In this document: one piece after another, positions 10,260 to 61,828 of the stretch
Position numbering within the stretch: the first letter of the stretch is position 1
Layout: each line of letters opens with the position of its first letter
Source: Gracilinanus agilis
Lineage: Eukaryota
Assembly (NCBI RefSeq): GCF_016433145.1
Contig: NC_058134.1
Coordinates: forward strand, 283,036,533-283,100,532
DNA length: 64,000 bases
Direction: 5' to 3'
The notes under the pieces: generated by a model
Seen by the model: only the letters and a program-made list of their open reading frames with translations
Databases searched by the model: none
What the model was told of the DNA's origin: nothing
Position numbers and translations under genes: made by a program

Positions 10260-12160
10260 TAATTAATTTTATTTTGGGTTTATTTTTATTTTTAAATATT
10301 TTTCCACATTTCCATGATTTATTTTCTTTCCTTCCCCTCTTCCCTTCCCACTCCCAGAACCAACAAGCAATTCCACTTGGTTGTACAAATGTTGTCACTT
10401 GATACCTATTTCCATATTATTCATTTTTGCTTTAGAGCAATTTTTTAAAAGCCTAAACCCCAAATCACATACTCATATATGCATGTGATAAGTGATGTCA
10501 TGTTTTGCTTTTGCATTTCTACTCCCATAATTCTTTCTCTCAATGTGGACAGCATTCTTTCAAAAGTCCTTTAGTAGTGTCCTGGCTTGTTGCATTGCTA
10601 CTAGTAGCAAAGTCCATTACACTGGATTTTTCCATGATGTTTTGCTTTCTGTGTACAGTGTTCTTTTGGTTCTGCTCATTTCACTCTGCATCAGTTCATT
10701 GAGGTTCTCTCAGTTCATATGGAAAGTGTTGTGAGGAAGATTATTTAGAATTAGTTACATATAGGTTATATGGACCTAGCAGGAAGGGCTGGAGCATTCC
10801 AAGATGGAATGAAGGAGCAGGAAGTTGCTTGTGTTCTGAGAGGGACTCCATTAGTGGTTGGCACAAACTGTTGCTAGCCCTGGGAGATCTCAGAGTTAAG
10901 GACACCCTGCATCCTGATTCCCTGGGATCCTGAGTGGTGGTGGCTTTCAGCAAGTGGATAAGACCTGCAGAGCTGCACCAAGTGGAGGAGGGGTTTGGGA
11001 TCTGGTGGATAGCATCTCAAGCACACTCTCTGTAATTGGGTACCTTGGACCACCTTGGCTTTTGGCATCCCGTGATCATTTTTGGATGACCGTGAGAACC
11101 CTGAAAGCCACCCTCAGCCCCTTTAGCTGCGCTGGTCAAACCTAAGCAGCCTTCCAGTGACTCCGGTACTGCTCCTTTAGCCCTGCCTGGCCTAGGTCAA
11201 TTAGAATTAGAGTAGAGAAGTCCTCCCCTTGCCCTGTGGTTTTGCCCTTTAGGTTCTTAAGTGTAGAATTCCCTATCCCACTTTTATTAGTAAATCATAA
11301 TTAAAACTGTTAAAACCCTTTACCTTGCCTGCTGGTTCCAAAGGCCCTGGCCTAGGGTGAGCAGAGTGACAGTTGGGGCTAACTGTCTTTCTTGATTTTT
11401 GGTCTCCCTATCCTGGCTGGCCCTGTCTCTCCTTCAACCCAGTGTGTGTACCCACAAACCATTAGGACATATTTACATCCCTGGTGCCCCATCTCTTTTT
11501 ACAAAAGCCTCTAGATCATCAACCCTTATAGCACAATAACATTCCATCATCATCATATACCACAATTTGTTCAGCCATTCCCTAATTGAGGGACACCCCC
11601 TCATTTTCCAATTTTTTGCCATCACAAAGAATGCAGCTATGAATATTTTTGTACAAGTATTTTTCCTTATTAACTCTTTGGGGTACAAACTCAGCAGTGG
11701 TATGACTGGATCAAAGGGCAGGCAGTCTTTTAAAGCCCTTTGGGCATAATTCCAAATTGCCTTCCAGAATGACTGAATTAATTCACAACCCCACCAGCAA
11801 TGCATTAGTGTTCCAATTTTGCCATATCCTCTCTAACATTTATTATTTTCCTTTACTGTCATATTGGCCAATCTGCTAGGTGAGGTGGTACCTCAGAGTT
11901 GTTTTGATTTGCATTTCTCTAATTATGAGAGATTTAGAACACTTTCTCATGTACTTATTGATAGTTTTGATTTTTTTTATCTGAAAACTGCCTATTCATA
12001 TCCCTTAACCATTTGTCAATTGGGAAATAGCTTGTTTTTTTTTTTTTGTATAATTGACTTAGTTCCTTATAAATTTGAGAAATGAGACCTTTGTCAGAGG
12101 TTTTTTTTATAAAATTTTTTCCCCAATTTGTTGCTTACCTTCTAATTTTGGTTACACAAA
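10260..12160 (-). mobile_element. LINE-1 3' fragment (antisense) interrupted by an LTR
   Basis: The ORF 11473-11805(-) translates as degenerate L1 ORF2 C-terminus (HCWWGCELIQSFWKAIW...CTKIFIAAFFV...CPSIREWLNKLWY). L1 3'UTR continues at 10260-10726. Confidence 0.85.
10727..11503. mobile_element. Solo ERV LTR inserted into L1, 4-bp TSD AAAG
   Basis: TGTTGTGAGG...TTTTTACA termini, AAAG at 10723-10726 and 11504-11507, and L1 sequence resumes on both sides. Confidence 0.75.
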
Positions 12161-20000: not shown

Positions 20001-20153
20001 CCTTTAAATTCAGGTTTGCTAGGAACTGAAAGCTTTTCAGTAAGGCCACAATACTTTTCAACAAGAATTCACAAGGATCACAAAAGGGGTCAAGAGAGGA
20101 GTCTTAGATTTTTATCTATTCTCTTATTGGTAGAGAGAGATAGAGATAGAGAT

Positions 20154-20208
<55 letters not shown>

Positions 20209-21004
20209 NNNNNNNNNNNNNNNNNNNNNNNNNNNNNNNNNNNNNNNNNNNNNNNNNNNNNNNNNNNNNNNNNNNNNNNNNNNNNNNNNNNNNNNNNNNN
20301 NNNNNNNNNNNNNNNNNNNNNNNNNNNNNNNNNNNNNNNNNNNNNNNNNNNNNNNNNNNNNNNNNNNNNNNNNNNNNNNNNNNNNNNNNNNNNNNNNNNN
20401 NNNNNNNNNNNNNNNNNNNNNNNNNNNNNNNNNNNNNNNNNNNNNNNNNNNNNNNNNNNNNNNNNNNNNNNNNNNNNNNNNNNNNNNNNNNNNNNNNNNN
20501 NNNNNNNNNNNNNNNNNNNNNNNNNNNNNNNNNNNNNNNNNNNNNNNNNNNNNNNNNNNNNNNNNNNNNNNNNNNNNNNNNNNNNNNNNNNNNNNNNNNN
20601 NNNNNNNNNNNNNNNNNNNNNNNNNNNNNNNNNNNNNNNNNNNNNNNNNNNNNNNNNNNNNNNNNNNNNNNNNNNNNNNNNNNNNNNNNNNNNNNNNNNN
20701 NNNNNNNNNNNNNNNNNNNNNNNNNNNNNNNNNNNNNNNNNNNNNNNNNNNNNNNNNNNNNNNNNNNNNNNNNNNNNNNNNNNNNNNNNNNNNNNNNNNN
20801 NNNNNNNNNNNNNNNNNNNNNNNNNNNNNNNNNNNNNNNNNNNNNNNNNNNNNNNNNNNNNNNNNNNNNNNNNNNNNNNNNNNNNNNNNNNNNNNNNNNN
20901 NNNNNNNNNNNNNNNNNNNNNNNNNNNNNNNNNNNNNNNNNNNNNNNNNNNNNNNNNNNNNNNNNNNNNNNNNNNNNNNNNNNNNNNNNNNNNNNNNNNN
21001 NNNN
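20209..21004. other. Assembly gap (796 N)
   Basis: N run flanked by a (GA)n microsatellite on the left and a truncated SINE on the right. Confidence 1.
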
Positions 21005-21936: not shown

Positions 21937-24394
21937 ATGGCAATCTGGGAGGTAAAATGTGTGTGTCTGTATGTGTTGGGGGGCTGGGGATGAGAGAGAG
22001 GGACAGGATTGCCAACCTTTTCCCAAGGATTCTATTCTTCTCAAAAAGCTACAGTTCTTAAGGGGACTTAGTAAACTTGTTTTTTTAATATTTATAATAT
22101 TTTATTATTATTATTATTTATAATTTATTTATTTGTTTATTTATCTAAATTATTTATAATTATTATACATTTATTATATATAAAATTAATTTATAATTAA
22201 TATAATAATTTTGGTAAATATATTTTAATATAATAGATTTCCTTTGTAGTTCCATATATTTTGTTTTATATATTTAAAAACATTCTGGGTAAGGGTCCTT
22301 AGAGTTCACTAGACTGCCAAACAAAAATGGTTAAGAAATCCAAAATCTCTGGTTGTCTCCATTTCTGAGTTTGGGTCCGGCAGGTTGGTATTACTTCTCT
22401 GATCATAAGCACCAGCTGTATACTGAGCCTACAACCATCTCTTTTCCCAGGACCTGAGAAGCTGGCAGTTTTGGAAGGCAGTGTTGGCTGAGGGCCTGGG
22501 GACCCTGATCTTTGTAGGGGTGGTGCTTGGGGCCTCTTGCCCTAGCAGGGGCTCTGTCCCAGGAACGACCCCAAATCCTCTACAGCCAGCCCTCGCAGGA
22601 GGGTTGGCTGTAGTGGCCCTGGTGCAGGTTTTGGGGGAGATCAGTGGAGCCCAAACCAATCCAGCTCTGACCCTGGCACTGGTTTGTGCCCGCCGGCTTG
22701 ATCTGCTCCGGGGAGCTGCCTTCATCCTGGCACAAAGCACAGGTGCCATTCTGGCCTCTTCCATTTTTTACCTGGTACTGCCCCAGACTACAGTAGTTCA
22801 GCTTGTAACCAGGGTAAGTAGCCGCCTCTTCTCTCCCCTATTCCCCATCGGTGAGTGACAAGAAGGGTGGAAGGGATGGGCAGGACCTGAGTGACCTGGA
22901 AGGGAAAGGAAAGAGAGAAAGAAAGAACAAGTGTTGTTAAACAGCATGTTAATGTGTAACAAGATATTTATCTAAATAAATGGTCTCTGGAATCAGCATC
23001 TGCCCAGGGCTCTGGAGCCCCAAATCTGGAAGATAATTCTCCATCTCCTCCTTCAGCTAGGCAGTGGAGGTCATGCAGGCCAAGCCCTGGCTATGGAACT
23101 CTTCTGCACCTTCCAGCTGATTCTCACAGTATTTGCTGTTACTGAGCGGGGGCAACAGGCCGCTGGGCTGGGCAGCCTGGCTGTGGGCTTTTCGGTGACT
23201 GCTGGGTCTTTGGCTGCGGTAAGGGAGCCCCACTTCCTACTCCCTCTTTCCAGGACTCCATAGTTTTTACCAGGTGAAAACAATCAAAATGCAAATAGCA
23301 TGCAAATCCAGGCAGCAGTTTCAAAAGCCCACCTGGGTGAGCTTTCTAGGCTGCAGCTCTGATGTCATTTTTTGAAATCTAATTTTTATTGATCTCTTTG
23401 GCCCTCATTTTCCAGGGTGCCCAGGAAGCCTTCCCTTGTAACAGACTTCAAAGGAAAGGGAAGGAGGCCATTCAGTGACCCAGTCTGCCAGTGGGCAGGA
23501 TACCTAGAGGACAGAGCCCGCTTTTCCTTCCTCCCTAAGGCCAAGCCTTTTGAACAGGAGAACATAACATACCGTTAGGGGGAATGGTTTCAGAGTTCTG
23601 GGCCAACCCCTAGGACAAATCTGCCCTTTCTGTGGGGGGGTCAGAAGGGTCCCTCCAGACTTCCTGTCACGATGAGAGGGCCTTTGGTTTGGGGACAGAG
23701 ACTGATATCTTCCTGCCTTTTGTTTAGGGGACTTTCTCTGGAGGCAGTCTGAATCCTGCCAGGTCCCTGGGCCCTTCGGTGGTGACTGGGATCTGGGACC
23801 ACCACTGGGTGAGAAGCCCTAACAGGGTGGGTGCTTGAGGCTGAGGGTGGCTTCCTGTGCCCTGGAGAGGTCCCAAGGAATCGTGCAGCATTCACAGTCA
23901 CTTGGGCTCATATAGGCTCACAGGCTCATAGACTTAGAGCTGGAAGGGAGCTCTGTCCTTCAGTCCTGTGCAACGCTCTCTGAACCCTTTTAGGGTTTTC
24001 CGTGTAAAGATACTGGTTTGGGAGGCAGCTAGGCCTAGAGACAATTGGTTCTGGGTTCAAATGTGACCTCAGACACTTCCTAGCTGTGTGACCCTGGACA
24101 AGTCACTTTAGCCAAAGAAGAAAGTCTAGGTTTCTAGCTAGTGCGGGTTGGGGGTGCAGAGAGGGCCCACATTCCCCCTGACATCTGGCCTTTCCCCTGC
24201 AGGTGTACTGGATGGGCCCCACCGTGGGAGCTGTCCTTGGAGGCCTCTCCTTTGAGTTCTTCCTCTCCTCAGGGGCTTCTCCGAGAAAGCTTGTGGTGTG
24301 TGGGCCACGAGGGGGTGTGGGAATAGTGGAGGCTGCCCATGGGTCTCAGTCCTCCGTGTCCAGCAGGACGCCCCAAGGCCCGCTCCAAGCCTGA
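21937..24394 (+). CDS. AQP14: Aquaporin-14-like water/solute channel, 5 coding exons, 270 aa, intact
   Basis: Exons 21937-21951 (MAIWE), 22451-22813 ([21 protein letters not shown]...[13 protein letters not shown]...LVTR), 23057-23218 ([28 protein letters not shown]...[13 protein letters not shown]), 23728-23808 ([27 protein letters not shown]) and 24203-24394 ([14 protein letters not shown]...PLQA*). All introns are GT-AG and phase 0, with no stops or frameshifts. It has two NPA motifs and its last three introns sit at the same positions as in MIP. The AQP14 name rests on its position immediately upstream of AQP0 and on recalled Aqp14 signatures (GAQxNPA, a MAxxExxRSxQFW N-terminus, a KLVxC...IVE tail). 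Confidence 0.88.
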
Positions 24395-25013
24395 GTGAGG
24401 CTCCATCTGTGTCTCCTGTGCAGAGCACGGCCTCTGTCTAAGCGACTTCTAGATCCTCCCCAGCCGTGCCTCAGTTTCCCCTGTCTTCCATCCAGTGCTA
24501 TTGAAGGGTTGACTAAGGCAGTGATTTTAGGCCCAATAACAACATCTCACTCTGGTGCCCCCAGGAAGGCCCTTGCCCGGCTCTTACACTATCCCCCACA
24601 GGGCGCCCCAGGGTTCAAGAGGCCAGGCTGGGACTTGGAATGGAGGGGGCAGAGGGACACCAGGGCTCAGAGAAAGCCCCGACGCAGCAAAATCATTCTG
24701 TCCCAGGCCTGCAGGGCTCACGGCTGCCAGCCTGGGCCAGCCAATAGCAACGGCTCTCCTAATCCTCTCGGATGGGGCAGCGGTCTCCCTAGCCCACCCT
24801 CCCGCGATCCCCCAATTCCCGAGGTGCCTGGAGCCCCCAGGGGCACTCCCTGAGCCGGAACTTCATACCCCAAGTGACCAGCCGCTGGTTCTTTGGTTTC
24901 TGACCCGTTCAGGGCCTCAAATCAAGACGCTCTTCCCCCCTCCCCCCCCCCACTTCCCAGAATGCCCCCAAACCCCAGCCTTTCCCTGCTGGCTGTCTAT
25001 TTCTCAGGCAGGA

Positions 25014-27773
<2,760 letters not shown>

Positions 27774-44048: not shown

Positions 44049-44259
44049 TTTTATTAGCCAGTCTCTGAGCCAGGGATGACCACACGTGTGCTACTTAACC
44101 CTGAGAAAACAAGCCACCCCACCCCCACCCAGTAATATCTTCCTCTTCCTCTTAGGGCCGCAGAGAGGCCCTGGGCCAAGGCCGGCTCTCACCAAGATCC
44201 TGCCTCTGGCCCATTCTCTGCCTCCTGGCCTCCCTTCCCTGCTGGCTGAGCAGCCATTT

Positions 44260-47200
44260 ATGGGCTTGGACATGATGAACTGCGAGCTTCTCGCCACATG
44301 CAGCGCCCTCGGATACCTGGAAGGGGACGTTTACCACAGAGAGCCAGACTGCTTGGGTGAGCACCCCAAGGGCGCCCGACTCCCGCTTCTCCCAGCGGGG
44401 CAGGCGGCGGCTTCCGCAGCCCCCGTGCTGCCCCCAGCCCAGGGACACGTCTCTTCTCCCCCGCAGAGAGCGTGAAGGATCTGATCCGCTACCTGAAGCA
44501 CGAGGATGAGACGCAAGATGTGCGCCGGCAGCTCGGGGCGGCCCAGATCCTCCAAGGGGACCTCCTGCCCATCCTGGTCCAGCACCGCCAGGACAAGCCG
44601 CTCTTTGATGCCGTAGTCAGGTTTGTGGGCCTGCCCAGGGACACTGCGCACAGGCCCAGCCCCGGCCCAGCTCTCCAGGGAGCTTCCTCCACCTTCTCTC
44701 CCTTCCCTCCTCAGGCTGATGGTGAACTTGACCCAGCCGGCCCTGCTCTGCTTCGGTAAAGTGCCCCAGGATCCCAGCTTCCGGCACCATTTCCTCCAAG
44801 TGTTGGGTTACCTGCAGTCCTACAAAGAAGTGAGGCTCTCTCGGGGTGCGCGTGCGGAGTGGGGGCCGGAGAGAGGGTCTGCGGGGGCTCACGCTCGTGC
44901 CGCCTCCCCTTTGCCCTAGGCCTTCGCCAACGAGAAGACCTTCGGGGTCCTCAGCGAGACGCTCTACACGCTGCTGCAGCTGGTAAGCGAGGCCTGGGGA
45001 CCCTCTCCCGCCTCTCTGGCTCCCCTCTGGGCGGCGGCAGAGCACGGGAAGGCAAGGTTTGGGGACAGACCCCCCGCCAGGGCCTCGTCGCTCTCCCGCC
45101 CACCCCCACCCCCTTGTGCGCTTTCAGGGCTGGGAGGAGCGTCAGGAAGAAGACAACCTGCTCATTGAGCGCATCCTCCTGCTGGTCAGAAACGTTCTGC
45201 ACGTCCCCGCTGACCCCAGCCAGGAAAAGGTGAGTGCAAGGGGGAGGGGAGGAAGGCAGGGCCCCAAAGGACCCCCCTGACCCCGCCGGTCTCCTCCTGC
45301 CCAGCACGTTGATGACGAAGCCAGCATCCACGACCGGCTGCTCTGGGCCCTGCACCTCAGCGGCCTCGACGACCTGCTGCTCTTCTTGGCCAGCTCTGCG
45401 GCCGAACAGCAGTGGAGCCTCCACGTGCTAGAGATCGTCTCCCTCGTGTTCCGGGACCAGGTGAGGCGTGCACCCCAGCCCCTGGGGCCCCGCCACCCCC
45501 AGCCTGGGGCCCCGCCAACTCACCTGTGACTTCCCCAGAACCCTGAGCACTTGGCAGCCGCGGGCCAGGCACGCTCGGCCCGGGAGCAGGGCGCTGACAC
45601 GGTGGAGCTGGAAGTGCTCCGGCAGAGGGAGACAGCGGAGAAGAAGAGCCGGGCCCTTCAGCGGAGCAGCAGGTGAGCCGGCCCTTTGGGCACGGGGCTC
45701 GGCCCAGGGACACAGACTCGTGCCGGGGAGGGCTCGGGGAGAGCCGCCCTGACCGGTGCGCTTCTGCAGGCACTCTCGCTTCGGCGGCTCCTACGTGGTC
45801 CAGGGGCTGAAGTCCATCGGAGACAGGGATGTGGTCTTCCACAAGAGCCTGCCCCGCGTGAGTGGGGCCTGGAGCAGGAGGGCTGAGGGCTGGGGGGCCG
45901 GAGGGGCCGGACGGTCGCCTCTGCTGGCACACGGAAGGCCCCGGGGCCGTGGCTTGTGACCCCCTCTCTAGTTTCAGACATACAGCCCAGACTTGGGGAA
46001 GGACGCTCGTTATGTGCCCCGGCGCCGGCAGCCTGCTCCAGAGTCCTCTGTCCAGCGCCGCTCGGCCCTCAATGTACGGCTTTTCCTCCGTGACTTCTGC
46101 TCCGAGTTCCTGGAGAACTGCTACAACCGCCTCATGGGCCTGGTCAAGGTGAGCTGTGGGAAGAGACTCAGAGCACGGGGAAATGGCTAAAGAGAGGCTG
46201 TGGCAGAGGCTGGGAAAGGGATGCTCTCAGGAGCTCTGGGGAGCCCGCTGTAGGGGCAAGGGAGTCGCCGACATTGGGGTATGGGTGGTGGGAGACGAGA
46301 GGACATCAGTGAGAGAGACGAGGTGGGAGGAGGCCCAGGGGCTCCCTGGGACCTGCAGGAGTCTGGGCAAGAGACAGGCCAAGGGGGCACCCAAGGCTTT
46401 CTTGTGATGGGGTGTCCCCTCCCTGGCATCAGGACCACCTACTCCGGGAGAAGGCGCAGCAGCACGACGAAACCTACTACCTGTGGGCCCTGGCCTTCTT
46501 CATGGCCTTCAATCGAGCCTCCAACTTCCGGCCCGGCCTGGTCTCCGAGACTCTCAGCGTCCGCACCTTCCACTTTATCGAACAGAACCTTACCAACTAC
46601 TACGAGATGATGCTGACTGATCGGAAGGAGGCGGTCTCGTGGGGTCGCCGGTGAGCATTTCCTTCTGGTCACCGAGGCCCCGGACTCCAGCCGTGTGTTT
46701 GTCCTGGCCTGGGGTCCCGGTCAGCCCAGAAGCTGCTGGGGTCACCTGCTTGCCACGTCTTCGTCTTCTCATTCTGGTCCTTCTCATCTCCAGAATGCAC
46801 CTCGCCCTCAGGGCCTACCAGGAGCTGCTGGCCACAGTGAACAGGATGGACGCATCGGCAGACGAGGCTGTGAGGGAGAGCAGCCGGATCCTCAAGAGTA
46901 AGCCTCCTCCCCCCTTCTTTCCTGGGGCTCCCCCCTGTCTCTTGCTGCTCCGCCTAGGCTTTCCAGCCCTTTTGCTTCCTTCCAGACAACGTCTTCTACG
47001 TGATGGAGTACAGAGAACTCTTCCTGACCCTCTTTCGGAAATTCGATGAGACTCGCCAGCCCCGCTCCTATCTCCGCGACCTGGTGGAGACGACCCACCT
47101 CTTCCTGAAGATGCTGGAGCGTTTCTGCCGGAACCGAGGGAACCTGATGGTGCAGGTACTGGGGGTCAGGAGGCTCATGGCTTGCTGGGAGGAGAGCCTC

Positions 47201-50200
47201 CTTTTTCATTTTTTTTTTTTTCAAAAAAGTTTTAAAATTATGAGCTAGAAAATCATCAACGTGAACATTTCTATATACAAAGGAAACTAGAAAAATAGGG
47301 ATCGTACAGTAAACCACAAATCTACCACATGTAGCTTACTTATAAAAAGTTTTTTCTAAACCCTTACCTGCTGTCTTAGAATCAATACTGTATATTGGTT
47401 ACAAGGCAGAGGAGTAGTAAGGGTTAGGCAATGGGGGTTAAGTGTCTTGCCCAGGGTCACACAGCTAGGAAGTGTCTGAGGCTAGATTTGAACCCAGGAC
47501 CTCCTGTCTCTAGGCCTGTTTCTCAATACACTGAACCACCTAGCTGCCCCCACATGTAGCTTATTTTTAAAAATATGTTATAAATTGAACGGGAGGCCTG
47601 ACATTCATGGCCCCTGCTTGTTGGTGAACCCTCCTTGGGTCTCTGTTTTTTTAGTGTTTCATTGATATTTTTTTTCCCTCTCTTTTTTTGGGGGAAAGTT
47701 GTCACTATGCTCTACTCTACTATCCTCTCTTGTAACAAAAGTATAGTCAAAGGAGCAACTAGGTGCTTCAGGGAATTGAGATCCAGACCTAGAGATGGGG
47801 AGGTCCTGGGTTCAAATTTGGCCTTAGACCCTTCCTAGCTGGGTAATCCTGGGTAAGTCACTTAACCCATTGCCTAGCCCTTACCACTCTTCTGCCTTGG
47901 AACCAATAAACAGTATTGATTCTGGGGCAAAAGGTCAGGGTTAAAAAAACCAAAAAGAATAACATAGGTGGGGCATTTTTGCATTTTATCTATGGATATT
48001 TATTCTAGTGAGGCACATGGTAAATTGAAGGTAAATCTAATTCCAAACAATGATGCATCAGCCCCTTGGCCATCTTGAATAAATCATTTATCTTTTTAAT
48101 AACAATTTCTTAAAGTCTACAATTTTCAAAATGCCTTACCAAACAAGATAGTGAGGGAAAAAATGAAATACATTTAAATTGTCTGATTTAGCTTAATTTA
48201 GCAAACATTTAGATTGAATTGCTAGATAAGAAGACCTAGGTTGGAATCCTCCTCAGAGACTTAGTGATCATTTGGTCTTGGGCCACCCACACATAACATC
48301 CCCTACCTCTGTTTCCTCATCCATAAAAGAGGGCTTGAACTGGTTGACCACTGAGGGCCCTTCCATCTCTAAATCTCTGATCCTATTATGGACCTACTAT
48401 GAATTAAAGGCATTAGGATAGTCACTGAGGGTGATACAAAATAAATAATATATTCTGCCCTTAAGGAACTTGCCATCTAGTGGGAGAACCAGAAAGAATT
48501 CTCATAGGCAAAGGAGGGAGCTCCCAGGCTGGCAATTCCTTGTAGGCCCTGAAGCACAGAGAACCCCTAAGGGCTGAAGATGGGATTTGACCAGAGGTCT
48601 TTTTCTTTTTTTAATTTTATTTTTAAACCCTTACTTTCTGTCTTGGAGTCAATACTGTGTCTTGGCTCCAAGGCAGAAGAGTGGTAAGGGTGGGCAATGG
48701 GAGTCAAATGACTTGCCCAGGGTCATACAGCTGGGAAGTGTCTGAGGTCATATTTGAACCCAGGACCTCCTGTCTCTAGGCCTGGCTCTCAATTCACTGA
48801 GTGACCCAGCTGCCTCCGACCAGAAGTCTTTTTGACATAACACAGATCATTGTATATGGGCCGCACTAGGAATTTAGAAGGGAGCAATTCTTTTCCAGTT
48901 AGAAAATTCTGGTTCTGTTGAGGAATTGGACTTGCAGAGTGAGTATGGTGGAACTCAAACCTGGGTCTCTCAGACTCCATCCACAATGCTGAATCATGGT
49001 GGTAAATAAACAGGATTTATATAGTGCTTTAGGCTTGCACAATTGATCGGATTTGTTCCTCACAACAACCCCATCAGGTAAGTCCTGACATGCCCATTTC
49101 ACAAATGAGGAGACTGAGCCCAGGATCAGCCAGCTGAGTGCCCGAGATGAGATTTGAACCCTGGTCTCCCCTTCTCTAGCCCACTCCCTCAGTTTAATGT
49201 GAGTTCCTGACTGGCTAGTGGGGGAGAAGAGCTGCCTTGGCACGGGGTTGGGGGGCAGCCCCAAGCGTGGCAAAGGGAGGGAGCCTCGCACGCCGCCCCC
49301 CCCCCCCCCAGCTTTGTGCTCAAAGCAGGGCTTCTCTACAGAACAAAAGAAGAAGGAGGAAAAAGAAGCCGAAGAAGAAGGCGCTGCCTGGGGCGCCAGC
49401 CTCTGAGGGCAGTGCTGCCCAGCACCCAGAGGGAGCAGAGGGCATGTGGCAAGCCCTTGCTGAGCAGCTGAGGCACTGCGCCCAGGTGGGTGCCTGCTGA
49501 GACCCTGGGCGGGGTGGGGGGGGGGGGTGAGGAGGCTGCCGCCGGCTTCCTCTCACTGCCCTACCCTGCCTGCCCTGCCCTAGAATTCAGAGCTCGCTCC
49601 TGACTCTGTGGTCCCTTTTGATGCCGCTTCTGAGGTGCCCGTGGAAGAACAGCGGACTGAGGCCATGGCTCGGATCCAAGACCGCCTCCTGGCTGGTCAG
49701 GCCCCCGAGGCCCTCACCCTCCTGCGGGCAGCCAGGTCAGAGCCCCGCCTCCGGAAGCCCCGCCTCTGGGGTGGAGTCGCCCTCTGGGCTGGGCGGGGCG
49801 TCTCTGCTGGCGGGCAAGGGTCTATCTTTCCCTCCCTCCCATGGGTCTATCCCTCCAGTCTGGGCTGGGCGCCTTTTTTGGGAATTTCGAGCAGCTTTTC
49901 CCCTCTTCCTGCCCGGAGTGATCCCGTCCCACTAATCCCGCCCTCTCACTTTCCAGAGAAGTGTGGCCAGAAGGGGACGCCTTCGGCTCCCCGGAGCTCT
50001 CTGCAGAGGACGAAGTTGAGTTGCTGCAACACATCTTCTCAGCTCAGTTTCCCCGTGAGTAGCCACTAGGTTCCGGGGGAGCGTGTCCACACTCCCTGGC
50101 TGGCTCCTGGGGCCAGGGATGGAGGGGTTCGTCAGGGAAGTGCCCCAGGGGCTTCCCGTCTCTTCTGCTGGTAGGTCAGCCTGAGCCTGAGGACCGAGGT

Positions 50201-51723
50201 GGGGAGGAAGGAGAAGGTGAGGAGGACCATGAAGAGGAGGAGGAGGAGGAGGAGGAGGAGCTGCAGGCCATCCAGGTCTCGGAGAAGGAGTTTAGCTTCC
50301 TGGACTACCTGAAGCGGTGAGAGGAGACTTGGAGGAGTTGGCTCTGGGGGGTGCGGGTACCGGTGGGGGGGTGCGGGTACCAGTGGGGGGGGGGTGACTT
50401 CTCACACACTCCTGCCCCAGGTTCGCGTGCTCCCACGTGGTCAGAGCCTGCGTGCTCCTGCTGAAGGACTACAGGGAGAATTCCCCCCACACCAACCACT
50501 GCGCCATCAAGATGCTCCACCGACTGGCCCACGATCTCAAGATGGAGGCCTTGCTCTATCATGTCTCCCTCTTCTGCCTCTTCAACAGGCTGTTCAGCGA
50601 CCCTGCCTCCGGAGCCTACAGAGTGAGGGGACTGTAGATGAGGGGCCGGCTGGGGTATAGACTGAGGATCTGAAGGGGGGGGCTGGGAGGCCATCCTGGG
50701 GGCCCTCCTTCAGGTGCCCCATCTGCCCCTCTTCAGGAATTAGTCACTTTTGCCAGATACATACTGGGCAAATTCTTCGGGCTGACGGAAGTTAACCGCA
50801 AGGCCTTTGTGGAGCTTCTGTTCTGGAAGAACACAGCTGTGGCCCGGGAGATGACGGAGGGCTACGGTTCTCTGGATGCCGAGTAAGGCTGGGGCTGGGG
50901 GAGTGGGGAGGAGGCAGGATTGCCACCCTACCTCAAGATGATTTGGAAGAGGGGGGAGCTCAGTGGATTGAGAGCCAGGCGTAGAGACGGGTGGTCCTGG
51001 GTTCAAATCTGGCCTCAGACCAGTGACCCTGGGCAAGTCACTTGACCCACATTGCCTAGCGCTTATTGCTTTTTGCCTTGGAACCAATACACAGTATTGA
51101 TTCCAAGATAGAAAGTAAGAGTTTTAAATAAATTTTTTAAAAAAAGATAGTTTGGAAGAAAGGATGGTTCAGTGGTTAGAGTGCTGGATCTGGAGAGGAG
51201 ATATCCTGGGTTGGAATCTGGCCTCAGACATTTCCCAGCTGTTTGACCCTGAGCAAGTCACTTAACTCCCATTGCCTAACCCTTACAGCTCTTCTGATTT
51301 GGGAACAATACACTGCATTAATTTTAAGATAGAAGGTGAGAGTTTAAAAAAAGAAGACAATTTGGAAAATTATATTTGGAGATATATATGTATATATATA
51401 TAATTTGGAGCTGTATTTGGAGAATGTGACTGCATCACAGTGAAATGCAGGGTAAAGCCTGTGCCCCGTGACCCCCAGAACCTCCCCCAAGGCCAGAAAT
51501 TCTATTCCTTTCCTTCCAACCTCTTCTAGGTCTTCTAACCGAAAAGCCCCCAAGTGGAATCCAGAGGAGGAGAAGCAGCTACGGGAGCTATACCTGGCCC
51601 ACAAAGACATAGAAGGTAAAGGGACAGTTCAGGGTAATTAAGCAGCCAGCATCTTCAAGAGTGGACTAAATGCTGGGGTGCACTGTGGATACAGGGCCAA
51701 AAATGAAGCAATGGAGGAGACTC

Positions 51724-51770
<47 letters not shown>

Positions 51771-54700
51771 CACACAGAGACAGAGACATAGGGGGCGTGG
51801 AGACAGAGAGATGGGGAAGGATCTGACTGCTGGGGTGAAGGAAAGGCCTTGTAAGTTTGGGACAAAAGGAACACTGGCTTGCACAGACCATTGAAGGGCA
51901 GTGATGTGTAATCAATCTGGAAAGGCAGCTTGTGGTTAGGCTTGGAAAGAGCTTTAAATAGCAAGCAGAGGATTTGTATTTGACCCTAGGACCTATGGAA
52001 CTGGTGCAAAAGATGGCACACAGTGTGTTCTCTGGGCACGTGTGTCCACACATGCTCACACCCAGTTTGTTACTAGAAAGGCAGAGCCGTGCCCCTCCCT
52101 CTCTCCACCATGCCCTACATTTTTTTCACAGCTCATGGTCTTGGCAGGGGGTGGCGTGCTACCTCTAAAAGGTTTGCCATCACTGCCCTAGGTAAAAGGG
52201 AACTATTGGAGTTTATTGAACAAGTGATGAACTAGACTTAGGCTTTGGGAAAATCCCCCCCAGCAGCTGTGTAGAGGATGGATCAGTGGGGAGACACTGG
52301 ACGAGGATTAGAGGTGGGAAGAATAAGCTCTTGCAGTAGTTCAGCTGAGGCCTGAGCAAAAATGGTAGTTGTAGGAGCAGTGAGGTGGCTCAGCAGATAG
52401 AGAGCCAGGCCTGGAGGCCAGAGGCTCCGGGGTTCAAATCTGCCCTCAGACGCTTTCTAACTGTGTGACCCTGGGCAAGGCATTTAACCCCCATTGCTTA
52501 GCTTTCTGCCTTGGATCCTATACTTAATATCACTTCTAAGACAGAAAGTAAGATTTGTTGTTTTTTTAAGTATAAGTCAGGGGGCCCAGGACAGAGCCTT
52601 TGGTTACATTCAGAATGGGGGCAGGGCAGGAGTGGGAATTAATGATGATCCCACAAAAGAGACTGAGAAATGGTCAGGGTAAGGCCATAGAAGGCCATGA
52701 GGACACTGAACCCTAGCCCTGCTTCTTTGAACCCTCTGACTTTGAGAGCTCACTTGGTCTCCCTGGGCGTCAGTTGGCAAAGAAAAGGGTTGAACATCCT
52801 CTCTGTTCTGTCCAGGCCTGTGCTCCAGTGCAGTATTGGATCCTGATGAGGCTTAGAGCCCAGAAGGGCTGGGATGGAGGTCCAGGAGCTTCAGGGCCTT
52901 CCTCCACCAATTGCACTCCTGTCTCCCCAGGGGAGGATGTGATAGAAGCCATCTTGGCCCGCCTGGATACTAGGACTCGTTCTCGAAAACAAGTCATCCA
53001 CCATCTGGTTCGACTTGGACTGGCCGACAGCGTCAAGGATTTCCAGAGACCCAGGCAGGTGTCCTCAGAAGGCTGGGGGTTTTCTTTCCTTTTGTGGTGC
53101 TCATTTTCTCCTGACCATGATTCTTCTCCAAGAAGGAAGGGGATCAACGTGGTTTTATGGACGGAGGATCAGGAGTTAGAGCTGCACCGGCTCTTTGAGG
53201 AGTTCCAGGATTCAGATGGTGAGGGGATCGCTGCGGAGGGGTCTCTGGTGTGGGAACCAAGCAGTGTGGCTGGCTGTCTGTCTCTCCTTCCCCTCTCTGT
53301 TTATCTCTCTATTTTCCCCTAGACACATACTTTCTGTCTTAGTCACAACCTAAGATCAAAGGCAAGACAGTGGGGGTTGAGTGATTTGCCCGGGGCCATA
53401 CAGCCAGGAAGTGTCTGACACCAGATTCTTCGAACCCAGGCCCTCCGGGCTCTCCATCCACCAAGCCACCTAGCTGCCCATTGGTGTTCTTCCACTAGTC
53501 CCAGCTGCCTGTTACTTAGGAGGGATCAGGAAGGTCTTCACATTGGAGGGGGCTCTTGCTTTGGGTTTTAAAGGAGAGGTAGGAATCCAAGGAGTGAAAA
53601 CAAGTGAGTGCATGCAGACATAGAGTATCTGAACAAAGCAGGGGACTTCCTGCGAGCCATGTTTGGGGAATAGGGAGCAGTACATTTCGGCTAGTGGCAA
53701 ACATGACATGGTTAGGCCATGGAGTGGGAGTGTGCTGGATTGTGAAGGGCCTCTAATGGCAGGCCAAGCAGTTTTTCACTTTTTTAGGCAATAGAGAACC
53801 AGAAATCTTTTGGAATGGAGAGGCAATATAGGACCATATATATAATGGATAATGTGCTGGGCCTAGAGGCAGGAAGACCTATCCCTCCATGCCTTGGCTT
53901 GGGGCCTGAGAGGACTGGGGAAGCCTGGACAAATCTATTTTCCTCAGTTTGCCCTCAAATCAAAGGAGATCAAAGGAGATGATGCTTGCCGGAATGCTCA
54001 GTGCCACGCCTGGCCTTTAGTTACTTCCTCCCCTCCCTACCCCATCAGGAAGCATGGTTACAGGAGGAGGGTGCACTGGGGGCTCATGTGGAGGTTTGGG
54101 CAGTAGAAGAGAGATGTGGCAGAGAGGGACGATCTTGGGGCATGGGTGCTGTCACCAATTGGATGTGAGAAATGAGCAAAAATGCCGAATTTTTAGTAGC
54201 AAAAAAAGTGGCATCAGAAAGGGAGGGTTTGAAGGAAGGGGATGAGTCCCCTCAGGCCAGGCAGTCTATGATCTGTTGGGCCATTTTCTGAGTTTGGGAG
54301 AGAACTTGGGTTGGATGTGGAGTTCTGCAAGGCATCTGCATTTTGGGGGTAGCAGAAGCCTAGCACCACGGGGGAGAGTGTAGGAGAGAAGAAAACGGGG
54401 CCTCCTTTAGATGCTAAAGGGTCAGATGAGAACATGACAAACACCAGGAAGCAGAGGACCAGCAAGAAGAGGAGGCCATCGGGAAGCAGAAGGGCCATCG
54501 TCAGAGGCTGAAGAATGTCCTGGAAAGGAGAGGAGATCATCAATGTTCTGAGAGCCAGTGTGGAGGCGGAGCCCAGAGTGCGGGCTGGTGGGGCAGCAAG
54601 GCTCTGCTCAACAAAGTTTGGAGGCAGAGAAGGCGGGCTGAGGATCCCAGGCCCAGAGGAAGAGAAACGTTGGTCCAAGGGCCTCAGGCCCAGAGGAGGA

Positions 54701-56855
54701 GAAGGGTCAGGCGGAGGGGCACAGGCCCAGAGGGAGAAAAGTGGGGCAAAAGCTTGGAAGGGGAGTGGAGGCGAGGCACCGGGTATCTCAGGCACCAGCC
54801 TTCTCCAGGCTGGGAGATGGTGCATCTGGAACAGTCCAGGAGGTTTGGTAGATGTGGACTAGAGGGATTCCTGGAGGCAGTGAGTGCTCATTTCTGCATC
54901 AGGGGAGACAAGGTGGCTTCCTTCTCCCCGTGTGTCCCCCTCAGCTTCCATTGTCCTCTTCCACAGATGTCTTGGGTCACATCATGAAGAACATCACGGC
55001 TAAGCGCTCTCGGGCCCGGGTGGTCGAGAAGCTTCTGTCCCTGGGGCTGGTGACAGAACGCCGGGCCTTGTACAAGAAACGCCAGAGGAAGAAGCCTGTG
55101 AGTCCCGGGCTCGTGAGCGGCCTCTGGGTACCACCTGGTGGGCAGAGACCTAGTGGGTAGCCCGTGCGCCTCCAATGCCAGGGGATGAGCTTTATCTCAG
55201 CAGAAGAGGAGCCGGGGGCCTTAGGCAGGCTGGTGAAGGTATGGGTGGGAGCCCCAGGCAGGCTGAGCCTCCCAGGGATTCTCTGTCCCTCCTGGTCCAC
55301 AGGGAAGAGGTCTTTTGGGCATTGGTGGTCTATGTGTCCAGTGGACTTCACCTGGGTCTGCTCCGGCCACCTGCCATGGGGAGCAGATGGTAGTGTAGAT
55401 GGGTACTGATGGCTCGGGTCCTGCACTCTTGAGGAGGGTGGAGAGGCTGGACTCAAACTTTCTCCTGACTGAATCAAAGCAGCCTCATGTCTTGTCCAGA
55501 AGGTGGCCCCATCCTGGTCAGAGCTCTCATCCCCCAGCTCTCTTGGGCACCGTGCCCAATGGGCCTGGTTGACCTTTTATCCCCTCATCTCATCACTGGT
55601 CCAGAGAGGGGCAAGATCTCTCATGTCTGAGCCTGGCTGTAGCTGCTTCCTTTCAGGCGGCAGGAAAGGACCCCCTGAAGGTCCCTGACCAGGAGGATGA
55701 AGAGGAGGGGGAGGAACAGCAGGAGGAGGAGGAGGAGGACAGTGAGGAGGATGAAGAAGGCCCAGGGGCAGAAGCAGCTGAGGGCTCCCCAGTGCCCCTA
55801 CCCCAGAGCCTGAGGCAAATCCTGCAGGAGGAAGGTGAGGCAGCCACTGGCTGGGCTTAGACAGAGGCTTCTGGCCGGGGCCCAGGCTCCTCACCTTCCC
55901 TTGCCTTCCCCAGACTTCTCTGCCCCCCTTCTGTGGCTCCAGAACTGCCTGATCCGGATTGCTGACGACCGGGAGGAGGCTGGTGAGTGGGTATGGGGAA
56001 TGCTGGGGAGCAGGCCCCGGGGGCCCGAGACATGGTGGGGGAGTGGGGGGGTACCTGCTGCCCCCTCTAGGCCTGCCCCTCTGTTCCAGGCTGCACCCAG
56101 CCAGTGCCCTTGGTGCCTCTGACAGAGGAGAACGAGGACGCGATGGAGAGTCCGGCCTTCCAGAGGCTGCTCAGAAAGTTAGGGATGCGGCCCCCAGCCT
56201 TGGAACAGGTGAGGGCCTTGGCCCGGGGGATGGGCACACTCGCTCCCGACCTCTCGCTGACCATCGGCCTTGACTTCCCAACCACTTAGGAATCTTTCTG
56301 GAGAGTTCCAGCCCAGCTGAGCCCCGCAGTGCTGCGGACAGAAGCCGCTTCTTTGGCTCAGGCTGGCCTTATGGAGCAGGAGCTGGGGAAGGAGCAGCCG
56401 CCTCCCACCCTGGAGGCCCTCCTGCCAGCTGGGAAACGGAAGCGAGACCCCAGGCTGCCAGGTAACAGGCCTGGGATGGAGGGAGAGATGGGCAGCGGGG
56501 CAGAGGGCCAGCCTGAGGCCTTACCACATGCTTTCCCAGCCATTTCAGAAGTAGTGGCCGAGGAGCCATCAAGTCCTGGGCCCCAGAAGCCTCTGTCACC
56601 GGACAGTGCCGGGGGGCAGGGGATGGATGGAAGCAAGGACAGAGGTATGTGTGCCTCCATGTCTTTGTGTCTGTCTGTGTCTGTGTGTGTGTGTCTGTGT
56701 GTGTCCGTGTGTGAGACCACTCTCTGTCATTGGTCCCATGGAGTCCCTCACCATGTCCCCTCCCTTCAGATCTCCTGGATTCTGAGCCGGACTCCCCTGA
56801 GGCCCCCAGAATCCCCAAGAGGAGGCGGTTTCTGATAGAGGATGAAGATGACTGA
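44260..56855 (+). CDS. TIMELESS: Protein timeless homolog (replication fork protection/circadian), 28 coding exons, about 1205 aa
   Basis: Exons 44260-44356 ([23 protein letters not shown]), 44467-44620, 44715-44829, 44920-44982, 45128-45229, 45305-45460, 45539-45672, 45770-45857, 45972-46148, 46433-46650, 46794-46897, 46986-47155, 49342-49485, 49584-49735, 49957-50054, 50175-50316, 50421-50622, 50737-50882, 51530-51615, 52931-53054 (probable GC donor), 53133-53218, 54967-55097, 55657-55834, 55914-55982, 56090-56208, 56290-56461, 56540-56644 and 56770-56855 (...[11 protein letters not shown]). Phases are consistent and the total is 3618 nt. The translation matches recalled human TIMELESS motifs ([44 protein letters not shown]). 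Confidence 0.97.
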
Positions 56856-57135
56856 GGAGTGGCCCCTCTGGCAGGCTTTGGTGTGACTGAAAAGATGCCC
56901 CCGTGCCACTCCCCAAGGCTTGGGTCCAGGGAGACCCCCGTGTGGGGCAGCCTGGCCAAGGGGGCAGCAGGGGTTTCCCTCTCGAAGCTCTCCCTGGGGG
57001 AGACTTTGTTTCCGGGTCCTTGGAGAGCAGGCCCCTGCCCCAGGCCTGGGTTCCCTGCCTCATCCCCCAGCTTTGGAGCCTGGCGTGGGAGGGGGGTGGC
57101 TCACAGGTGCTTCTGGTTCTGTGCTTTGTTGTGAA

Positions 57136-60378: not shown

Positions 60379-61828
60379 ATGGAAGGTGAGATGTATAGAG
60401 CTTAAGGGGTAAATCTCAGACCTGAAATCTAAGTCCACATCTGCTGGCCATTTTTCTGCATCACAAAGGGGCAAGGTCTGCTCTGGTGCAAGATGGACAA
60501 ATATTTGCAATGATCATCTCTCTTGCCAATAGAATAGTGGGAGGAGAGGTATGGAGAAGTACATAATGGGGTTAGGGTTACAAAGCAGTGAAACATTTCT
60601 ACAAAGGAAGGACCAAGGGCCGTTCTTGAGCAGGTGGGTTTCCTTCTGTCTCTTGTGCGATGACAAATTACTCTAGCCACCAATGAGGCTTTCTATAACT
60701 AAAGGTGGAGCAGGGGAGGAAGGAGAGCCTAAATTCTCAAATAATTGGTCCAAAAGTTCCAACCTTGGCTATTGGTGTCCAAAGTTTGATCAATGTTGGT
60801 TGTAATATGGTTAGTCATTCCCCTTTGAGACCCCGAGTACTTTTAGACACCAGCTGGAAAAGAATAGCTTTATGTCTTCTTCATATTCCTCTCTAGCAAG
60901 GCTGTGTCCAGGACCCTCCAAAATGTCTGGAATGGTGCTTCTCTGCTGCTTCCTGCTATGCCCAATAACTGCCCTCCCAGGCAGATCCCAGCCAAAGGAT
61001 CCTTTATCATTAGAGTCCCAGCTGCCCATTCTCGGCTCCCTGCCCTGTCGGGACCTATTGCCCGTGTCTCTTCCCAGCTTCAGTCACCTAGCCCCTCTGC
61101 CTAGGTACCTGATCAGCCTGCCATTGTACATAACCCTGGAGCGAGCTGGCTGTCCATTTGATGCTCATGCCCTTCGGCTGCAGCTCTATAGACTGGGTGG
61201 GGTGAAAGTCACAGAGATGCTCATCCGACAGCTTCGAGACCTGAGAGGGCACGGAAGAGAAAAGAAGTCCAACCAGGTCCTGTTCTCCATTCTTCAGCTT
61301 CTAGGCAGGAGGAACAAGAGGTTGGGGAGGGCCTCTCGTTCACTCTCCATGGCAGATTGCTTTGATGAGAAGGAGCAACAGGTACACAGTGTTATCCATT
61401 TCATGCCACAGTTAGGAAGTTACTATAACCTTGGAACAGCCTTCTATTATGCTGCCCAGGACTGCTCTGCTCAGGCTTGGGACCGAGGACAGGAAGCAGC
61501 CCTGGACCTAGGCTATGATTTCCTTATTGGGCTGAGTGGGATAACAGGGGGTCCTGCAGGAGTCATGGCCAGTGTGGTCCTCAGGCCAGTGTTCAAAGCG
61601 GGTGTCCAGAGGCTGATCCAATATTACAGTAAAACGGAGGAGTCAAGCAGTCCTTCTCCGGGCACAGATCAGAGTTGGCAGAAGGCCTGGAGAATCACCA
61701 CTGAAGCGGGCAGCAGCTGGAAGAAAGGCCAGGAGGTGACTCCAACTGTGGGCTATGGAGAACATATGGATGAAGTGACCGAGAGCACCTCCCTGTGGAA
61801 TTGGGTGTTCTTCAAGAGTTGGGGATAG
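60379..61828 (+). CDS. APOF: Apolipoprotein F family precursor, 2 exons, about 312 aa
   Basis: Exon 1 60379-60385 (ATG GAA G|gtgag) joins exon 2 60897-61828 (ctctag|CA AGG) in phase 1. Signal peptide MVLLCCFLLCPITA. Motifs PLSLESQ, SLPSFSHLAPLPRYL, LQLYRLGGV, R|SLS..DC..EKEQ, YNLGTAFYYA, DLGYD, GVQRLIQYY and WNWVFFKSW align with recalled human APOF. APON is a related paralogue, so orthology needs a tree. Confidence 0.88.

Follow-up and report, generated by a model that had tools for sequence, protein, structure and literature searches.

An unannotated AQP14 orthologue upstream of MIP in a didelphid opossum, with a conserved channel core and a rewritten cytoplasmic tail

The aquaporin Aqp14 was named by Finn et al. 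(2014, PMC4245216), who reported near-complete forms in Prototheria and Metatheria and exon fragments only in eutherians. The gene lies upstream of aqp0, is divided into five exons in sarcopterygians and starts with an exon 1 that encodes just 3-7 residues (Chauvigne et al. 2019, PMC6906440). Among marsupials, the accession table of the first study contains AQP14 of the tammar wallaby and of the Tasmanian devil; Monodelphis is not listed there for AQP14, although it is listed for other aquaporins (PMC4245216). AQP14 sequences of koala (MN168302) and wombat (MN168303) were later deposited, and the orthologues were described as complete (PMC6906440). Metatherian AQP14 possesses a selectivity filter of the pattern G-T-G-R, while the filters of AQP4 and AQP0 contain an aromatic F/H (PMC4245216), and a valine of TM1 has been described as a fifth constriction residue in fish Aqp14 (PMC6906440). 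Transport and trafficking have been measured in fish Aqp14 only, namely with the zebrafish, seabream and salmon proteins in oocytes. The fish protein is a polytransporter, the trafficking of which is controlled by Thr241, a PKC site, and by Ser257 in an R-S-S PKA site; in platypus, which has an alanine there, and in some birds, the PKC threonine is absent as well (PMC6906440).

Earlier papers thus already cover the AQP14 family, the link to AQP0, the loss in eutherians and the occurrence in marsupials. The gene that is described below was first recognized in a sequence-only reading, which had described AQP14 as linked to AQP0, lost as a gene in eutherians and acting as a polytransporter in fish, and this matches both papers (PMC4245216, PMC6906440). 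It did not regard the family as new, but it understated prior knowledge, as the wallaby, Tasmanian devil, koala and wombat genes had already been published. It knew of no functional study of a marsupial orthologue, and no paper on marsupial AQP14 function was found in the literature searched. A didelphid AQP14 is absent from both published lists (PMC4245216, PMC6906440).

In the window, by which we mean the whole stretch of 64,000 nucleotides of Gracilinanus agilis DNA that was analysed, a five-exon gene is found directly upstream of MIP (Table 1). Splice reconstruction yields a coding sequence of 813 nt for 270 residues plus TGA with no internal stop. All four introns start with GT and end with a polypyrimidine tract and AG, and all junctions are in phase 0. 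The start codon is found in the context GGCAGAATGG, with A at -3 and G at +4 as in a Kozak sequence, and stop codons close the reading frame upstream of this ATG. Because the mechanical listing of open reading frames gives pieces of exons 2 and 5 only, the gene appears hidden, exactly as the first reading had noted. That reading had further claimed five GT-AG exons, a complete 270-residue frame, a strong Kozak context and both NPA boxes, all of which are borne out by the reconstruction. It had also claimed six transmembrane segments: five of the six helices lie above the hydropathy threshold used, and TM6 follows from the alignment with AQP4 and AQP0.

Exons 2, 3 and 4 separately match the Pfam MIP profile PF00230 with E-values of 1.7e-25, 1.2e-7 and 1e-7, respectively, and the matched profile positions (2-116, 128-177 and 180-205 of 222) are colinear, which is far above chance. 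Exon 2 was also aligned to the AQP4 structure 3gd8. Exon 5 gives no Pfam match and still aligns in frame with the tails of all other AQP14 proteins.

Table 1. Positions in the window of the AQP14 gene, its landmarks and the neighbouring MIP and APOF genes
Feature	Position	Strand	Description
AQP14 exon 1	21937-21951	+	ATG plus 4 codons (MAIWE), donor GT at 21952
AQP14 exon 2	22451-22813	+	residues 6-126: TM1-TM3, loop B SGAQTNPA, putative filter residues V30 and G55
AQP14 first NPA	22658-22666	+	residues 75-77, in exon 2
AQP14 exon 3	23057-23218	+	residues 127-180: TM4, loop D, TM5 with putative filter residue S177
AQP14 exon 4	23728-23808	+	residues 181-207, 81 nt: loop E with G186, second NPA, R192
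AQP14 second NPA	23752-23760	+	residues 189-191, in exon 4
AQP14 exon 5	24203-24394	+	residues 208-270 plus TGA: putative TM6, cytoplasmic tail
AQP14 rewritten tail block	24299-24331	+	exon 5, 11 residues
AQP14 retained tail Ser pair, in SQSSVSS	24344-24364	+	exon 5
MIP/AQP0 gene	25259-27773	+	intact, 263 aa, four GT-AG exons
MIP exons	25259-25618, 25892-26056, 26410-26490, 27588-27773 (with stop)	+	360, 165, 81 and 183 nt plus stop
APOF	60872-61828	+	single exon, Pfam PF15148; the genome's own 301-aa model starts at a downstream ATG

The MIP start codon follows 865 bp after the AQP14 stop on the same strand, and in wombat and sugar glider, too, the AQP14 orthologue precedes a 263-aa MIP-family gene by some 1 kb, so that the placement upstream of MIP, as first proposed, is conserved. 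The AQP14 exons after exon 1 (363/162/81 nt) mirror the first three exons of MIP in size (360/165/81). In RefSeq models of poison frogs (P0010) and in one UniProt model of quail (P0043), exons 1-4 of AQP14 are joined to MIP exons 2-4, a hint of either read-through or faulty annotation. The further surroundings comprise open reading frame fragments at about 44100-57000 on the plus strand, which by their likeness to the human protein, as judged by eye, are putative parts of TIMELESS, and the single-exon APOF, which is 84% identical to that of Monodelphis domestica and 55-70% identical to that of Australian marsupials. These APOF values mark the source of the window as a didelphid opossum different from M. 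domestica. The order AQP14-MIP-TIMELESS-APOF would fit the 12q13-type synteny of mammals. An open reading frame on the minus strand (11473-11805) is presumably a repeat fragment, as it resembles the C-terminal part of the LINE-1 ORF2 protein (…WWGCELIQSFWKAIWNYAQRA…).

Several features of the non-coding sequence may be recorded here. Intron 1 has a GC content of 0.29 compared to 0.47-0.54 in the remaining introns, and it contains an AT-rich low-complexity block with TTAT/TAAT-type repeats at 22060-22290. Intron 4 carries what we take to be a MIR-like SINE core (…agctgtgtgaccctggacaagtcactt…) at 24040-24112. Part of the promoter region falls into a gap of 796 N (20209-21004) that ends some 930 bp before the AQP14 ATG, and in the stretch 20100-21004 a GA-rich microsatellite, which translates as DRDRDRERER…, leads directly into this gap. 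From the AQP14 stop as far as MIP intron 1 (24395-25767, plus strand), neither AATAAA nor ATTAAA occurs, so that no canonical poly(A) signal marks the 3' end of the AQP14 transcript. The sole variant hexamer in this stretch is a TATAAA at 25163, which is located about 95 bp before the MIP ATG and is probably the TATA box of MIP.

The assignment of this gene as a didelphid-opossum orthologue of AQP14 is supported by protein comparison, phylogeny and gene structure. A phmmer search of exon 2 in a set of 1.84 billion representative proteins gave as its best match a 261-aa wombat protein (XP_027710792.1, P0001, termed 'aquaporin-4-like') with 91% identity, followed by proteins of platypus, echidna, tortoise/turtle, cave-fish and pheasant. 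UniProt names these relatives Aquaporin 14, and RefSeq names them AQP4-like, AQP2-like or MIP-like. Exon 2 aligns from residue 6 of the wombat protein, and this supports the first exon of five residues. Where exon 1 encodes the peptide MAIWE here, wombat AQP14 has MVIWE, the echidna protein has MASWE, and those of crocodile and birds have MAIRE. In a maximum-likelihood tree calculated from 20 sequences (IQ-TREE, LG+C20+F+G4), the candidate belongs to the AQP14 clade (100/100), which is separate from AQP4, AQP0/2/5 and AQP1, and therein to the marsupial AQP14 subclade (100/99), as expected from the subfamily membership that the first reading had proposed. The candidate is 83% identical to sugar-glider AQP14 (over 260 aa), 60-63% to monotreme AQP14 and 51-59% to sauropsid and fish AQP14, compared to 39-44% identity to AQP0, AQP2, AQP4 and AQP5. 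Also the position upstream of MIP, the five exons and the five-codon exon 1 are those of the subfamily. The putative constriction, as assigned by alignment, consists of non-aromatic residues, V30 in TM1, G55, S177 and G186, together with R192. The filter reads G-S-G-R instead of the published metatherian G-T-G-R, the TM1 valine is kept, and the NPA boxes, the filter arginine and the loop E block are all retained.

Compared to the other marsupial proteins (sugar glider P0154, wombat P0001, koala MN168302 and wombat MN168303), the candidate shares the MIP-upstream position, the peptide that exon 1 encodes and the G-x-G-R filter, and over the first 176 aa its identity to the wombat protein is 86%. 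It differs by the serine in place of threonine at the TM5 filter position and by a loop D that is two residues shorter. It belongs to the American (didelphid) side of the marsupials, and its branch is 4-6 times longer than those of glider and wombat. The platypus (A0A7D3Q9Z1, identical to P0156) and echidna (P0155) proteins have the same architecture, NPA boxes and tail serine pair, and in these as in the candidate a glutamine replaces the loop B histidine; they keep the tail cysteine, arginine and aspartate, unlike the candidate, and have alanine at the position of the PKC threonine. Teleost Aqp14, as in Astyanax (P0008), is 51% identical to the candidate, possesses the same non-aromatic five-residue constriction and also lies upstream of aqp0, but its gene has six exons, and it keeps Thr241 and the R-S-S PKA site, where the candidate has proline and glutamine. 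AQP4 and AQP0 have the fold, the NPA boxes and the phase-0 exon boundaries after exon 1 in common with the candidate, and differ from it by an identity of only 39-42%, the aromatic F/H filter, a four-exon gene and placement in separate clades.

One of the reference models shows a peculiarity of its own. At residues ~177-200 the wombat protein XP_027710792.1 (P0001) reads exon 4 in another frame (YESCQVPG... compared to GTFSGGSMNPAR), skips the start of exon 5 and is without the second NPA box, which reflects either a faulty gene model or a true lesion of the wombat assembly.

No AQP14 protein model from the source genome or from Monodelphis was retrieved with the wombat protein as query from a set of 5.8 billion proteins, and this same set does contain the source genome's own APOF protein. 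The locus therefore seems to be an unannotated orthologue from a marsupial order without any listed one. A search of short open reading frame products with exon 2 returned a tortoise protein only, and a metagenome scan for orthologous AQP14 DNA gave no match. Among the sequence records listed, one alone contains the complete gene, probably the source assembly, and none with the complete gene is recorded as RNA. Among sequencing runs of a related organism, many carry 13-16% of the exon 2 words, and several very small runs (19-36 million letters) carry 16% of them. If these small runs are RNA from a related opossum, strong expression of AQP14 in some sample type would be implied.

The opossum gene stands out by its rate of change. 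Relative rate comparisons, for which echidna or platypus served as outgroup, give 19 unique changes for the candidate and 4-5 for the sugar glider (p 0.004 and 0.002), so that AQP14 changed about four-fold faster in the opossum lineage than in that of the glider, and the terminal branch of the candidate in the tree measures 0.20, compared to 0.03 (glider) and 0.05 (wombat). As a control served APOF, which is located 36 kb away and evolved at equal rates in both lineages (21 v 22, 22 v 18 and 15 v 22). The speed-up is therefore specific to AQP14, and a generally fast evolution of the opossum lineage could be rejected.

The kind of change differs between the two parts of the protein. In the core (residues 1-228), the 19 substitutions of the lineage have a mean BLOSUM62 score of +0.47, and 84% of them score 0 or more, compared to a mean of -0.61 and 50% for random non-synonymous mutation of the same core codons (P = 0.0015). 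The shortened loop D is the sole length difference to the diprotodonts, and it keeps the frame. In the tail, by contrast, six changes fall within eight residues, of which five are radical, with a mean BLOSUM62 score of -1.67. They affect a block for which both glider and wombat have CVTCRDVEMVE and which is closely matched in monotremes, crocodile and fish, and is replaced in the candidate, in which the conserved C-x-T-C-(R/K)-D reads CGPRGG. Of 75 columns without variation in eight other AQP14 proteins, five are altered in the candidate. Two of these alterations, C243R and D245G, belong to the tail block, which thereby has lost an otherwise invariant cysteine and aspartate; the others, V127L, A197S and F228L, are found elsewhere. 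Invariant columns are changed less often than variable ones (6.7% v 13%), which is the expected direction, but the difference is not significant (p 0.17). A compensated frameshift in the tail was considered and rejected, as neither of the alternative frames of 24299-24331 resembles, by eye, the conserved motif, and the changes are read as point substitutions. From this pattern, the pore-forming core behaves as if it is under purifying selection, while the regulatory tail behaves as if it has been freed from constraint or re-purposed.

For the two trafficking sites of fish Aqp14, the alignment gives a mixed picture. The position of the PKC residue Thr241 is occupied by Pro242, and the PKA residue Ser257 is kept as Ser258, with the arginine two residues before it changed to glutamine. 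The conserved C-terminal threonine (PKC) and serine (PKA) sites, which count as a trait of AQP14, are not found as such in the candidate. The missing threonine is no bar to AQP14 membership, because platypus and some birds lack it as well (PMC6906440).

The most likely reading, and one that we consider probable, is that the locus encodes a working AQP14 channel with altered trafficking control. The 270-aa subunit would fold into six helices and two NPA half-helices and assemble into tetramers, and its outer constriction would be formed by the small non-aromatic V30, G55, S177 and G186 together with R192. By analogy to fish Aqp14 and given the small residues of the filter, it may pass water and neutral solutes of small size, for instance urea, ammonia, H2O2 and glycerol. 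The channel core would be kept by purifying selection while the cytoplasmic tail was remodelled, so that a hormone-controlled trafficking of AQP14 may have been lost or rewired in the opossum lineage with the channel retained. More tentatively, and as a suggestion that goes well beyond this reading, didelphid AQP14 might have kept its pore and lost an ancient PKC-threonine switch (C-x-T-C-R/K-D), which would respond to vasotocin/oxytocin-type signalling, and thereby have become a constitutively routed or differently regulated solute channel; or it might be a living snapshot of the first decay step of the kind that removed AQP14 from placental mammals.

A different origin of the same changes would be GC-biased gene conversion in a GC-rich neighbourhood, which could have caused both the speed-up and the Gly/Arg-rich tail by fixing slightly harmful changes in an otherwise ordinary AQP14. 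The GC content, which is 0.33 at the 5' end, reaches 0.59-0.67 at AQP14 exon 5 and MIP, and G-rich codons result from five of the six changes in the tail. For the opossum lineage, the minimal codon changes that can be inferred comprise about 15 from AT to GC compared to 5.5 from GC to AT; this bias is, however, not significant (p 0.08), and the ancestral codons were guessed from proteins. It also leaves unexplained why the changes cluster in one regulatory block. While biased conversion may contribute to the changes, we doubt that it accounts for them as a whole.

The main rival to the working channel is a young or silent pseudogene: didelphids would recently have lost constraint on AQP14, as eutherians did at an earlier time, and no lesion would so far have struck the reading frame. 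Such a loss would agree with the acceleration being gene-specific (19 v 4-5 in AQP14 and equal rates in APOF), with radical changes in a tail motif that is conserved from fish to wombat and with the five altered, otherwise invariant columns. It would also be in line with the lack of a didelphid model in the 5.8-billion protein set, with the missing Monodelphis entry in the published AQP14 list, where this genus is present for other aquaporins, and with the lack of a canonical poly(A) signal between the AQP14 stop and MIP intron 1. However, no lesion is seen in the 813 nt, in the ATG or in any of the eight splice dinucleotides, the frame is preserved across the single length change, and the NPA boxes, the filter arginine and the loop E block are retained. 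The core substitutions are significantly more conservative than random ones (P = 0.0015), unlike what is expected from neutral drift, and we think that a pseudogene is unlikely. That the gene belongs instead to an AQP4-like or AQP2-like subfamily or is a tandem copy of MIP has practically no chance of being correct: although wombat and glider relatives are named 'aquaporin-4-like' and 'aquaporin-2-like' by RefSeq and exon 2 scores about equally against the solved structures of AQP4, AQP2, AQP0 and AQP5 (68-70 bits), this is refuted by the grouping with proteins named Aquaporin 14 at 100/100, and 51-83% identity to AQP14 proteins compared to 39-44% to others, five instead of four exons and the non-aromatic filter likewise speak against it.

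What the altered but probably working channel adds is modest: a didelphid AQP14 that was missed by annotation, and a gene-specific acceleration that is concentrated in a conserved trafficking motif. The knowledge of the AQP14 family as such is unchanged by the opossum locus. It extends the published AQP14 of Australian marsupials to the American (didelphid) branch, and it shows that gene prediction misses AQP14 in opossum genomes, while relatives are misnamed AQP4-like, AQP2-like or MIP-like. As AQP14 has been lost in placental mammals, only marsupials and monotremes allow its study in mammals, and a naturally occurring variant that combines a conserved pore with a changed trafficking motif would permit a simple comparative test of the role of this motif in a mammal.
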